Below are positions 13,361-22,300 of a DNA stretch of 64,000 bases, piece by piece. A program made the translations under genes and the position numbers. The stretch covers positions 634,737 through 698,736 of the forward strand of contig NIVC01000166.1 of NCBI GenBank assembly GCA_002269645.1, written 5' to 3'. Positions within the stretch are counted from its first letter, which is position 1, and each line of letters begins with the position of its first letter. Source of the DNA: Macrostomum lignano (Eukaryota). Below the pieces are notes generated by a model. It saw nothing but the letters and a program-made list of their open reading frames with translations. It did no database searches and was not told the origin of the DNA.

Positions 13361-16300
13361 TCACATGTCGCCGAAAATGCCGGCAAAAGTTTTCCTCAAA
13401 TTTCGCATCGTGTCGTCGCCTTCATCGAGGCTGTTCTGCATCTGCTGAGGCCGTGGCTGCTGCTGCTGACGACGTCGGTCAGACGACTCCGGGGTTGATG
13501 CTCCGTTGACCTTCTGCTGCTGCTGGTGCTGCTGGTCACCGAGTGGCTGCTGCGACTTGGCTCGCTGAGCCGCCAGCACCGCCGCCTCCGAGCAGGCGTG
13601 GTGCATCCGTGACAGGGTGAGCTCGGCTATCGCCCGCCTGTCCTCCTCCTGCGAGTCGCCTATTAGGGGCATGTCGGATCCGTTGGCCTGTGGTTTAGAG
13701 ATTGGATTCGCGTAGCAAACTACTTTGAGTAGCTAGTGTACAAGTAAAAATGCTTAGTTCAGTTACAAAGAGCTTCCAAACGCATCAAAGTTCCAGAGAG
13801 TTAACGCATCTGACCCTCTTCCGCCAACGACCTGCTGGTTTCGATTCGCGGTCTACATCTGTGGCTCGTATATAAAAATTAGCTTGTCGTTCAGTTCAAT
13901 TCAGGCCCATGAGAGCCAACGAACTCTCATACTTCGCACCAGTGCTCACAGACCCCCTTAAGATTATTTTCGAGCTCGTTAATGGACACCACTAAGTCAG
14001 TTGCAGTCGAAAGTCTGACTCAAACAGTAGTAAAATACCCATGGTAGACTTGCTTGCCAAATGATATGTACGCCCGTACAATGTGTAAAAATCTCATGTT
14101 CAATGAAGAATCTCAAGTTCGAAGAAAGATTTCTTTACAAATTATTAGTTAATTACTTTTTATTTTTATTTAAACTGAAGTTGAAAGCACCTGTTTCGGA
14201 TGGACACCTTTGCAACCAATAACGCCATGTATATTTTAGGCATATTGAATTCTACGCTGGTATTTTGAACAATCCGAGAATGAAAGCTGAAATGTAGGAC
14301 TCAACCTCTCATTCTGGCTAGCTGTAAGTGAATAAACATTTAATTAAAATGTTTATTATTATATAATTAACAGTCCACACACCTCAATGATGAATACTCT
14401 TCCGTTCTTATGCTGCACCGTCTCCACCGAGCAGATGTCCAGACCGCCGAACAGACGCGCCACCTCGTCAATCCACTGACGAAACCTTTCGATAGTATAT
14501 AGGAACATGCGCTATAACTTGGCCTATTGTTTACAAGCTATTTAAGAATAGATGTAACCAGAAATATCTTACTTGTCAGTCATGTTCAGCTGTTCAAGCA
14601 TTGCTGAGCTCACGTTGGCTTTCCAATTGCCAGATATACTACGCCGCCTGAAATTGTCACAGAGTTTACTTAATGCTTGATTCAAAGCCAATGAAAGCCA
14701 AAGCTAAAAAAGCAATTCCGACAGCGTCTCTGATAAAAAAGATCTAACTACTAATGCGTTCTTAATGCTTTTCAAAGCTTTTGCTTATCACTTACGCGTA
14801 AGCTTTGTAGTACGCGCCGATCTTTTGAACATGAATGTCGAATTTGGCATCGACTAGGGCCTCGGTTGTGGCGTAGGTGCCGGCCACCGCAAGAGCTCCC
14901 GACACGTCGCGATACTCGTCTGGGCCAGATATTTTGATCTGCAATTGGGGGGATTCACGAGTAGTAAGGAGCAAGTGGAGCAACTTTTTAAAACGAAAAT
15001 TGCTAGGAGCGTGTGTCAGTTACTTATTGCGACTTTCTACCTGATTCTGCGTGGGCGTTAGCCAATGGACTGCCAAATACTGTATTCAAATCACAAAGAT
15101 TCGCATTACTGTCTTGTTATGTACGCTTTTTCAGGTCAGGTTTCCAATTTAGTCCATAAAGTATTTTTTGCGATTAAAATCATATTGAAATATTTTTTCA
15201 ATTTAAATTTCCAAAAATGTCTATCGAAGATGCCGGATACCGAAATAAAGAAATGAAAACTTTTCTTGGCTTTGAATTTTCGGCAGCCGAGAAAAGCTGA
15301 CAGTCTTCAAAATGTCACGCGGTGCAGGCGCACCCGACAATACGAAAAGCCGCGAATGATTTTTGCGCGCCTTAGTTTTCTTCCGATTGGCGAACACCCA
15401 CGCAAAATCGGGTAGAAAGTTGCTTAGGAACTGAAGCAATGGACTTTCATAGCAGTTTTTGTTTAAAAACAGTCCAAGAGGTCGCTTCCTAACAAGCCGG
15501 ACCGACGCATCAAAAACGCGTTTCTATAGGCACGAGAAGCAGTTTACGCAGGTGAAAATGACGCCTCTGTATGCCCACAGCCCCATGTTGCGCATCTATA
15601 AAATGCGCTGCGGCTTGCCGATCGCTAATATTCGGGCTTTATTTGGCTAAACAGAGCGCCGCTCCCCCGCAGATTCCCTGGCAACCCGAAAGGCGGACCC
15701 CACAGAGGTTCCATTAAGTAAGAAATTCTTTCTTAGCTACGAGTAAGCAACTGGGGCTTCTTGGCTGAGTCAGTGCCGAATCACTCGGTTTAATCTGCGC
15801 TAGCGTGTAAACAAAACAAGAACTGGCAGGCCCGGGCAAGTATACTAGAAGGTCAGAGGACCGAATGAATACGCACCTTTCCAAGGCCACTGTGCGCGTG
15901 GCCGATCTTCATCGCCATGGGAAAATTATCCTGTGCCACTGTCTGCCAATGGGAAGCGCGGATTAACAAACGAAAGATATAGAACACTTGGTATGGTATT
16001 GAAACTGACTGCAAGCACAGGCTACATATATAATTAACATTCCAATATATTCATTTCTAAGAAATCAAGCTTAGTATGCATGCTCAAAGAGTTTCATGCT
16101 GCTTCACTCTCAGCGCTACTGGCTGCATGCATTCCACGGTGCAAAGAAATACCCAGTCTCCTCGCTTCTGATTGGCTGGCAGTGCTTGACTGGAGAGGCT
16201 TTATAGGAGAGTTTATTCGGGCTCAAATCCCTAAACCTACTTCAACTCTAGTTTTTGCATTCAGTGCTTCATTTCTATTGAAACTCTGCATCAGTTGACC

Positions 16301-19300: not shown

Positions 19301-22300
19301 CTAACCAACCTTTGATAATACTCCTAACAGAGTTTGATTTGCCTGTGTGTGTACAGGACATCTCAAGCCACTATCGAACGCCTAACATCGTACATGTCAC
19401 GCCCTGTTATAATTATGCTGACATACATTTCCATTCAGTTCACTCGACAAAACGGACAGTCAATGTTCTATGCAGACTATTTAGCAGCCTCCGTGTGCAG
19501 GCACCGAGAGACCGCTACTAAAATCCCTTTGTTTATTTAATTGTAAGCGCCACGCGTGTAAATTATGAGTAATAAACTCAACTATTCCATCAATTAATTT
19601 TTTAAGTCATAAACTTAAAAAAGTCGCTTGTAAATAATTTCATAAGCAAATATCTGGTATTAACGTGTGCCTCTGTCCTTTAGCCTCGACGAAAAGAGTC
19701 TGTTTGTGGTCTTCTTTTTTCAATGTATGCATGCAGTTTTAGATGCATGCAGTGTATATCATACAGAATAACAAGTTGATATACTTGTATTCGTATATGT
19801 ACGCTCGTAATTGAGATTTTAACTATCTACATGTGCAAATTATTTACCACTGTGATATGCAATGGATTACTGGTACCTGAACCCCAAAGAGTTGCATATT
19901 CACGGTAGGTATATTCAGCACCTATGCCCAAGTTTTGGTACCAAAAAAGTTCATCTAGATATTTTTCAAGCTTTTAATCATCACTTCACAGTGCATACGC
20001 AGGGTAGCCCCTACTAAACTCTCTATAGTAAAGATACCAAAATGTCAAGCCATTGTGCCTGAACATACTACCATGCACTTCTCGTTCAGTGTCGCCCTTA
20101 CCCAGCCTTTAGATTTTCAACAGACTAGATAATTCAACAACTCAGGTGCAGCAAAGTGGTTCCACTGTCAAAATGCAGCACTCGGTCATGCATATGTAGC
20201 CGGTAGAAAAATGAAAACAAAAATTAGAAAAAATATAGATTCAACGCATATAAAATGCAATCCTCGCAGCGTACCTGGCCGGTTTTGATCTGCCTAAGCG
20301 ACTGCTGCATCTAATTAATTATTAATGATGGAGTTTTTCGGCCTAACTTACCGATTAAGTGCAATAAGATTGAAAAGTTATTTTAAAAGAAGAGTATGAA
20401 TAACTAATTTACCACGTCCAAAAAATTTGTGCTGCGATTGGCTCGAAGTTTGAACTCCTGGGAATTAAGAGGAGATATTTAGTAGGGCTCGCAGGCCGGG
20501 TTTTTGGATGCTGCAGCTCCCTTTCACAATGACGCCCGCATTGGGGCAAAATCATGAAAGATGGATGAACGAGTTCGAAGATTTTTAAAGCAAGACGAAA
20601 TCTCATATAGCAGAGAAATATGATTCCCCGATGGTAAATTAAGTTCCGCTTATCCTTGATTGCTCCAGAACTCGGAGCCGGACGGTAAGGGTGTTCGCTT
20701 TCGCCGTCTCAGAATTGGTTCAGCTGAACAAAAAAATTTGCACGCACTCGATCACCTTCTGCCGGCATCATATTGGCTTTTTAGAGGAATGGAAAAGAAA
20801 TTATTCGGCTAATCTCTTGAAGCTCTGCAGCTCGCCTTGTGCACTATTTCATCATGGATTTGGCGGCTAGCACGCTTGAGAAATGAACTCTGCTCACTGT
20901 TTTATGACGAGAAAGTCAGGGGCCTCTGTGCACCCTGTGTGAGTGCTTTGAGTATGAGTATCCTTGCTAGCTCCGGATGGACCGTCTCACTTTCGTCCAA
21001 CTCACCAAGTCCTGATAACAAGGAAAGTAGTTCTGCTCAATCAGAGGAAAGTTGTCGTCTCCAACGCGGCTTTGAATCTGGGCCAGGTGAGCGAACTGAA
21101 ACAAAAAAGGTGAGAAAAAATCACTGAAATAGGGTGTCCAATAGTTAAAATTGTCAATTGCGGAGATTGGTGTGGGTCTTGTCATTCTGTTCCCACCCCT
21201 GTGGGCCAGCCCTCAAGGCACACCAATTGCGGAGATTGGTGTGGGTCTTGTCGTTCTGTTCCCACCCCTGTGGGCCAGCCCTCAAGGCACAAAGAGTGCA
21301 CATGTCTGGCGATGAGAAAATCAGGACCGCTGTACGCCCAGTTTGAGCACTTTTCCCAGCATAAAACTACAGAAAAAATTTTTGCATTCAGAACACACTA
21401 CTGTTGAGTAGTAAAAAGCAGGAAAAATCATCCACTGTACAGTTGGAACTTACAAGCCAAGCTCGCTCCGAACAGTTAAACAACGCCATAGCGCTGTTGA
21501 TAGTGGGCACTCCGGCGTGCATGAAACCGATTATCAGCCTGCGCCAGTCTTTGTCGGCGTCTCGAACGTGCTGCCTCACCAGAACAAAATCCGGCTTGAA
21601 GCTTCTGCAAGTTGGGTTGTAGTTGTAGCCTCCAGTTAGTGCAATGGGTATAAGTAGTGGAGGCTGGAGTGGGTGTGTGTCTCCCGTACGACAATCCGAC
21701 GTCCATCAACGCTGGATACGTCGTCGGATGTCGGAATGTAGCACGTATTTGGAGGTGCGAGGCCAGATATACTTGAATCAACAGGTGGAAGCAGCGGAGG
21801 ATGGGGTCGGGGGTTCAAGCATCACTTTATACGGGGCCCTTCAAGGCAGTAATTTTTTGTCGGCAGTCAGGTAACAGTCGTTTTTAGGTATGCAATTTGA
21901 TAGAGCAGCTGGATTATCTTTTGTATCGATTCGCTGAGCACGCACGCATTCAAGCAGCGTCTTCTCTCTGCTCTGTGTGTTGCATCTGCAAAGCTAACCT
22001 CGCTGCAAAAATAAATTAATCAGGAGAAAAGACAGAAGACAAATAATTTTTTATGCATGCCTCATCGGCGTACCCGGGACTCTCCTGGGTATCGGAGAGT
22101 CCCCGATCGGCGATCGGCCCCGGTGCACGCCATCTTCACCTTAGGCTAGACAGCACAAGTCGCGCTTGAGAAGGCACAGTTTGCGATTGCGAGACAAGTC
22201 TCGAGACGTGGGTGTCTGCGGCAGTGTCTGATGCAACTACGCGCATTGTCTCAGTTTTATGGATTTTACAGATAAAGAATGTACTATATAAGAAATACAG

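Follow-up and report, generated by a model that had tools for sequence, protein, structure and literature searches.

A TIMP gene nested antisense in a synapsin intron of the flatworm Macrostomum lignano, a probable copy of the ancestral animal SYN-TIMP locus

Background

Why should a TIMP gene lie on the opposite strand within an intron of a synapsin gene in very different animals, and do flatworms share this arrangement? These questions are raised by a stretch of 64,000 nucleotides from Macrostomum lignano (assembly GCA_002269645.1, contig NIVC01000166.1, positions 634,737 to 698,736; hereafter the window), in which an initial annotation, made from the letters of the DNA, had placed a TIMP gene inside synapsin intron 5. 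The analysis presented here indicates that the locus is very probably the copy, in M. lignano or a sibling species, of the ancestral animal SYN-TIMP locus.

The nest was described in Drosophila and human by Pohar et al. (1999) and then in amphioxus, Ciona, sea urchin, Drosophila, the annelid Capitella and Nematostella by Candiani et al. (2010; PMC2825198), who found its location conserved in the synapsin alignment and reported its loss in nematodes. Platyhelminthes fell outside the sampling of both studies. According to a 2023 survey (PMC10755359), in which the word 'synapsin' does not occur, M. lignano has two canonical TIMPs and a bdelloid rotifer has none. In the planarian Dugesia japonica, double knockdown of TIMP (Dj-timp) and mt-mmpA rescues the mt-mmpA RNA interference (RNAi) phenotype (PMC4014983). 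Neither of these two papers gives the genomic context of flatworm TIMPs, and a literature search found no published account of a SYN-TIMP nest in any flatworm.

The initial annotation had viewed the locus as extending the arrangement to a spiralian or platyhelminth lineage. The spiralian part of this view was already in print for Capitella (PMC2825198), and the flatworm instance appears to be unreported. What the locus adds is thus a further case of an arrangement already described, and not an extension to Spiralia. As an expected further example of a nesting known across animals, it leaves knowledge of the SYN-TIMP locus itself unchanged; its interest is that Platyhelminthes would join the phyla that still carry a nested gene pair ranking among the oldest known, through an early-branching and genetically tractable flatworm.

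A complete TIMP gene within synapsin coding intron 5

A neuronal synapsin orthologue forms the host. Its model, built by hand from three-frame translations and the raw sequence, comprises 10 coding exons on the minus strand (24601-13361) with GT-AG splice sites throughout and encodes 509 amino acids. The product matches the Pfam families Synapsin (135 bits) and Synapsin_C (248 bits, profile positions 1-202 of 203) and includes the A-domain motif RRRFSSGD and an E-domain tail. It is 97-99% identical to the annotated M. lignano synapsins P0002 and P0242; the value for P0002 (PAA94630.1), the top synapsin match, is 97%, and the fragment P0242 shows no difference from the window across all exon sequence that the two have in common.

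Exon 5 ends in ..YFPCYQDL in phase 0 with a GTGAGT donor at 21005, and exon 6 starts in phase 0 behind an acceptor reading ..ggcag, whose AG occupies 15944-15943. With donor and acceptor at these positions, the interval 15943-21005 is exactly coding intron 5, as had been proposed, to the base. When exon 5 is joined straight to exon 6, so that two micro-exons considered below are skipped, the Synapsin_C domain is unbroken.

The TIMP coding sequence (16418-18856, plus strand) lies entirely within this intron (21005-15943, minus strand). It consists of five coding exons, all bounded by GT-AG, which form an open reading frame (ORF) of 810 nt and 269 amino acids. This gene model, together with a match to Pfam TIMP above threshold, bears out the earlier description of a complete five-exon plus-strand gene wholly antisense within synapsin intron 5. 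The features concerned are as follows.

15943-21005, minus strand: synapsin coding intron 5, the host intron; phase 0, GT-AG, 5,063 bp
21006-21095, minus strand: synapsin exon 5, 30 residues; the same in M. lignano P0002, P0242 and P0243
15877-15942, minus strand: synapsin exon 6, 22 residues; phase 0 start
15943-16417, plus strand: presumed TIMP promoter and 5' untranslated region, 475 bp from synapsin exon 6 to the TIMP ATG
16418-16553, plus strand: TIMP exon 1, signal peptide and the segment that follows it; ends in phase 1; 135 of 136 bases the same in a second M. lignano copy described below
16790-16887, plus strand: TIMP exon 2; ends in phase 0
16963-17104, plus strand: TIMP exon 3; ends in phase 1, the intron having the position and phase found in marmot TIMP1
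17787-17971, plus strand: TIMP exon 4; ends in phase 0
18608-18856, plus strand: TIMP exon 5, the C-terminal Cys-rich part; stop TAG

A second in-frame AG acceptor for TIMP exon 4 is present at 17802, 15 nt downstream of 17787; its use would remove GDAVT and with it the Gly conserved in the L..G motif.

The predicted protein begins with a hydrophobic leader followed by an N-terminal CxC...HPQ..FC signature. Residues 26-229 align with positions 3-174 of 183 in the Pfam TIMP profile PF00965 (33.1 bits, cut-off 23.1), a match that spans the N-terminal and C-terminal subdomains. The Pfam NTR module scores as high (33.3 bits), which might suggest another NTR-module protein of netrin-like, sFRP-like or PCOLCE-like type. 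Such an identity is very improbable: TIMP itself is an NTR-fold family, the TIMP profile is aligned over nearly its whole length with the C-terminal subdomain included, and the cysteine signature stands directly after the signal peptide. The top solved-structure matches are moreover TIMP-1 and TIMP-2 chains (E about 3e-4), the exon-intron structure resembles that of TIMP genes, and the gene occupies the genomic place of TIMP.

The sole relative found among 5.8 billion database proteins is P0001 (UniProt A0A1I8FMP7), also from M. lignano. It is a 161-residue model with several frame switches within exon 4, which reuses the exon 4/5 junction CQ/IEDT (here and below the slash marks an exon or cleavage boundary) and has an exon 5 nearly identical to that of the window. 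The remark that this gene is visible only as fragments is thus right, and its one database model is frame-scrambled. P0001 is named 'Thyroglobulin type-1 domain-containing protein'; this identity finds no Pfam support with either the whole protein or exon 5 alone. The name calls for correction in UniProt, where the M. lignano TIMP is present only as this fragment.

By analogy with the TIMP family, the product would be a secreted two-domain inhibitor; removal of the signal peptide would expose its N-terminal Cys-Ser-Cys wedge, and this would chelate the zinc in the catalytic site of matrix metalloproteinases (MMPs). The layout of the sequence further suggests that TIMP transcription would be driven by a promoter of its own, situated in the ~475 bp that separate its ATG from synapsin exon 6, and that TIMP would be spliced independently of synapsin.

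Homology of the host intron and of the nested gene

Whether the flatworm nest is the one known from other animals depends on whether the host intron is the same intron. The boundary in the window lies 15 residues past the conserved FPLI motif of synapsin, in phase 0, and the intron follows the codon equivalent to human ..NHKEM. In marmot SYN1 (L005), used as the mammalian representative, the junction reads FYPNHKEM/LSSTTYPVVV, also in phase 0; the intron covers 13568-48557 and TIMP1 lies on the opposite strand at 43498-40466. In Capitella (L002) the junction is ..HKEM/LVTPKFP, in phase 0, with TIMP exons on the opposite strand at 12862-10917, and in Tribolium (L004) it is ..NHREM/ITAPRFP, with an annotated PF00965 gene antisense in the intron. 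The distance from the FPLI motif and the phase are the same in all three. The comparison of intron positions for which the initial annotation had called thus yields the same codon boundary and phase 0, with an antisense TIMP, in marmot SYN1, Capitella and Tribolium, and the aligned boundaries show mammal, beetle, annelid and flatworm to share one positionally homologous host intron.

The guest gene leads to a similar picture. TIMP introns 1 (FC.SD./V, phase 1), 3 (L../G, phase 1) and 4 (GC..C./, phase 0) recur at the same positions in marmot TIMP1, so that the ancestral TIMP structure, with five coding exons and three of four introns alike in position and phase, is present in the window. These observations bear on a separate, convergent insertion of TIMP into flatworm synapsin. 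The host intron makes up about half of the intronic sequence of the gene, and landing in the 'right' intron would not by itself be improbable. Against this stand the identical codon boundary, phase and antisense orientation in four phyla and the negligible prior chance that TIMP, of all genes, should nest in synapsin a second time; the retention of ancestral TIMP intron positions also shows that the gene is not a retrocopy. With host intron and guest gene both homologous, independent insertion is effectively excluded.

The mammalian pairs (SYN1/TIMP1, and also SYN2/TIMP4 and SYN3/TIMP3) resemble the flatworm locus in having an antisense TIMP wholly within the phase-0 intron after ..YPNHKEM, as checked in marmot SYN1, and a TIMP1 of five coding exons with the shared introns described above. 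They differ in scale: the host intron measures 5 kb in the flatworm and 35 kb in marmot, and the distance from the TIMP start to synapsin exon 6 is ~0.5 kb and ~5 kb, respectively. Compared with the mammalian protein, the flatworm TIMP has three residues inserted in its N-terminal segment, a long stretch inserted ahead of the GC..C motif, and 13 cysteines. The invertebrate nests of Drosophila, Capitella, amphioxus, Ciona, sea urchin and Nematostella have, as here, an antisense TIMP in a conserved intron of synapsin.

At the end of the Capitella exon that precedes the TIMP intron (L002, 9756-9790), two GTGAGT donors stand in tandem 15 nt apart. Use of the downstream donor accounts for the extra VSNLW of the annotated Capitella protein. 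The string VSNLWL occurs also in the synapsin of the nemertean Lineus (P0115), and it may represent a conserved alternative 5' splice site.

A second Macrostomum copy and the evidence for selection

A second M. lignano contig of the same assembly, NIVC01000006.1 (GCA_002269645.1; L001), is colinear with positions 8738-25996 of the window at 92-95% nucleotide identity, introns included. Together with the 97-99% identity of the synapsins, this bears out the flatworm lineage put forward as probable from the letters alone, and the window sequence is an M. lignano allele or paralogue, or that of a sibling species. P0001 combines variants of the window with variants of L001; there must therefore be at least three distinct copies or alleles. 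An M. lignano genome contains the nest at least twice, as the diverged copies of the window and of L001, unlike the single-copy synapsin hosts of other invertebrates, a difference that we take to reflect the duplicated genome of this species.

The second copy keeps all five TIMP exons, the reading frame, every splice site and every cysteine. The exons differ by 17 substitutions in 810 positions (2.1%) with 0 gap columns, whereas in the TIMP introns ~5% of positions are mismatched and 96 of 1,705 columns are gaps. By the Nei-Gojobori method the changes divide into 9 synonymous and 8 non-synonymous, corresponding to a non-synonymous divergence (dN) of 0.013, a synonymous divergence (dS) of 0.049 and a ratio (omega) of 0.26; the binomial P for the synonymous excess is 0.008. 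These values provide a modest but consistent indication that TIMP is under purifying selection between the two Macrostomum copies. The 475 bp upstream of the TIMP ATG (15943-16417) form the best-conserved non-coding stretch of the comparison, at 97.9% identity and with no indels, whereas the TIMP introns, with gaps counted, reach 84-95% and contain numerous indels.

Several features weigh against the view that the locus holds a functional TIMP of the ancestral type. The classic signal-peptidase site, ASA/EF, lies six residues ahead of Cys1, whereas function requires cleavage at APG/CSC; with six residues left in front of Cys1 by cleavage at the former site, the canonical mode of inhibition would be lost. 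The mature chain contains 13 cysteines and not 12; those of the N-domain align, whereas the C-domain alignment is ambiguous, and the C-terminal half as a whole aligns poorly with vertebrate TIMPs. A single-sequence AlphaFold2 model of the mature protein is uninformative (mean pLDDT 36). The splicing pattern was read from the sequence, except for the exon 4/5 junction, which recurs in the poor database model P0001, and TIMP intron 2, although in the same phase, lies about 7 residues from its mammalian position. Finally, the selection signal is built on 17 substitutions only.

A rival explanation is a decaying or non-inhibitory relic, for example one in which cleavage after ASA leaves an N-terminal extension. 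The AXA motif six residues before Cys1, the divergence of the sequence (a mere 33 bits to Pfam TIMP), the odd number of cysteines, the long stretch that, compared with vertebrate TIMPs, is inserted between the SVC and the GC..C cysteines, and a sole database model that is frame-scrambled and named as something else would all fit this explanation. It nevertheless appears quite improbable, given that the ORF is intact with canonical splice sites and that the second copy has no indels, retains every cysteine and yields an omega of 0.26. Two canonical TIMPs are counted in M. lignano by the 2023 survey (PMC10755359). A planarian TIMP, Dj-timp, has an MMP-antagonist role supported by RNAi (PMC4014983), which speaks for genuine inhibitor function there.

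Distribution of the nest and reasons for its persistence

The nest was sought in further animals with a hidden Markov model (HMM) made from three human TIMPs and the window protein, with which synapsin loci were scanned for TIMP exons. Capitella, Tribolium and marmot served as positive controls, and their TIMP exons were all retrieved by this HMM; a strict scan for the N-terminal motif had missed the Capitella TIMP and was given up in favour of the HMM. No TIMP was detected in the synapsin locus of Clonorchis (HMM over 50 kb; Pfam on the homologous intron of <2.3 kb), in Lottia (HMM over the whole locus; Pfam on the homologous intron of 3.6 kb) or in the synapsin locus of Adineta vaga (HMM; introns of about 50-60 bp), and the synapsin annotation of Dicrocoelium, the only evidence used for this species, contains no nested gene. 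Split-exon HMM scans are of limited sensitivity, and these results are to be read as 'not detected', with absence not proven; this too tempers the interpretation given here. The proposal that other flatworm and spiralian genomes be surveyed thus met with a divided answer, the nest being present in Capitella and undetected in the two trematodes, the limpet and the rotifer. The contrast within Spiralia between Macrostomum and these apparent absences offers a setting in which to ask whether nesting has a function.

Why then has the nest persisted where it is found? It is possible that it is actively kept, by shared cis-regulation or a common chromatin domain, or by antisense TIMP transcription that tunes synapsin output or micro-exon inclusion. 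Position and orientation have been held for >600 million years in mammal, beetle, annelid and flatworm, and Candiani et al. (PMC2825198) argue for 'strong stabilizing pressures'. The unusual conservation of the TIMP upstream region abutting synapsin exon 6 between the two Macrostomum copies points the same way, as do two alternatively annotated synapsin micro-exons beyond the TIMP stop. However, an ordinary promoter combined with the synapsin 3' splice site explains the conservation of the 475 bp equally well, and the nest is reported lost in nematodes (PMC2825198) and was not detected in trematodes, Lottia or Adineta. A paper on duplicated Fugu Syn-Timp pairs, which by its title deals with degeneration and subfunctionalization, speaks against it as well. 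Active maintenance is accordingly judged unlikely.

Passive retention is favoured over obligate regulatory coupling. The persistence of the nest would be mostly a matter of inheritance, for which such coupling would be unneeded: a compact intronic gene can leave only through two breakpoints that spare both genes, and it therefore stays unless it is lost. The nest looks dispensable, because none was detected in Clonorchis, Dicrocoelium, Lottia and Adineta and because its loss is reported for nematodes (PMC2825198). Such losses and non-detections argue against a strong universal constraint on the arrangement.

Synapsin micro-exons within the host intron

The host intron of the flatworm, unlike its mammalian counterpart, also holds one or two annotated synapsin micro-exons.

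20413-20457, minus strand: micro-exon A, 45 nt (15 residues), AG/GT, in frame
20275-20310, minus strand: micro-exon B, 36 nt (12 residues), AG/GT, in frame; 36 of 36 bases the same in L001

Their use differs among the annotated M. lignano synapsin models: P0243 includes A only, P0002 includes both A and B, and P0242 reads through A. Inclusion would add 15 or 27 residues inside the Synapsin_C domain, an addition without counterpart in other phyla. If both are used, TIMP falls in the last sub-intron (20274-15943). The micro-exons are located about 1.4-1.6 kb past the TIMP stop. It might be imagined that the Macrostomum host intron gained lineage-specific cassette micro-exons whose inclusion could be modulated by antisense TIMP transcription reaching into them. 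Although this idea is improbable, run-through of TIMP transcription onto the micro-exons, if it occurs, would make the long-suspected functional coupling of SYN and TIMP concrete and testable.

Repeats and other features of the locus

The initial annotation supposed that the nest had survived heavy repeat turnover. This does not apply to the host intron, in which Tandem Repeats Finder detects no substantial tandem repeat; the large repeats of the locus, namely a (TCTG)150 array, a 69-bp duplication and a 19-bp array, sit elsewhere in the gene, in the case of the first two in neighbouring introns. No embedded RNA gene was found in the whole window by Rfam at gathering thresholds or by ARAGORN. 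A dispersed repeat of ~230-300 bp is present in TIMP intron 3 (~17232-17535), with copies at 3412-3639 and 35450-35731 that are 83-87% identical; it came to light through the BLAST matches of L001, and ARAGORN finds no tRNA in it.

The remaining exons of the synapsin model are listed below.

24186-24601, minus strand: synapsin exon 1, including the A domain
23764-23821, minus strand: synapsin exon 2
22954-23054, minus strand: synapsin exon 3; agrees with P0243
21454-21604, minus strand: synapsin exon 4
14796-14938, minus strand: synapsin exon 7
14573-14647, minus strand: synapsin exon 8
14383-14485, minus strand: synapsin exon 9
13361-13687, minus strand: synapsin exon 10, including the E domain and the stop

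An alternative exon 3 at about 21790-21690 was dropped, its frame and splice sites being incompatible, and was replaced by 23054-22954, which P0243 confirms.

The (TCTG)n microsatellite, of ~150 copies, occupies 22328-22928 and begins 26 bp past the donor of synapsin exon 3; related arrays of CTGT/GTCT type recur at about 52.9-53.7 kb of the window. In synapsin intron 4, a 69-bp unit is present in tandem duplicate (21155-21291) with copies 98% identical to each other. This is the worst stretch of the alignment with L001 (64% identity, 138 gap columns), and the two genomic copies thus differ structurally there. Just upstream of the synapsin start codon lies a 19-bp tandem repeat of 14.8 copies (24721-25000).

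About 1.8 kb downstream of the synapsin stop, an ORF on the minus strand (11031-11600) matches Pfam Fibrinogen_C with 122 bits. On the plus strand at 49244-60798, several long ORFs together make up a gene of multiple exons, one piece of which matches the AMP-binding enzyme domain PF00501 with 32 bits. Simple repeats of Ser/Pro-rich and CTGT type, whose GC and AT skew is extreme, interrupt this gene, which we suspect to be DIP2-like. An AMP-binding enzyme is likewise encoded next to synapsin in Adineta (L007). Finally, a plus-strand ORF of 391 amino acids (1806-2981), made of Ser/Thr/Pro repeats of TTEPSTS type with a hydrophobic end segment, looks like an exon of a mucin-type membrane protein.

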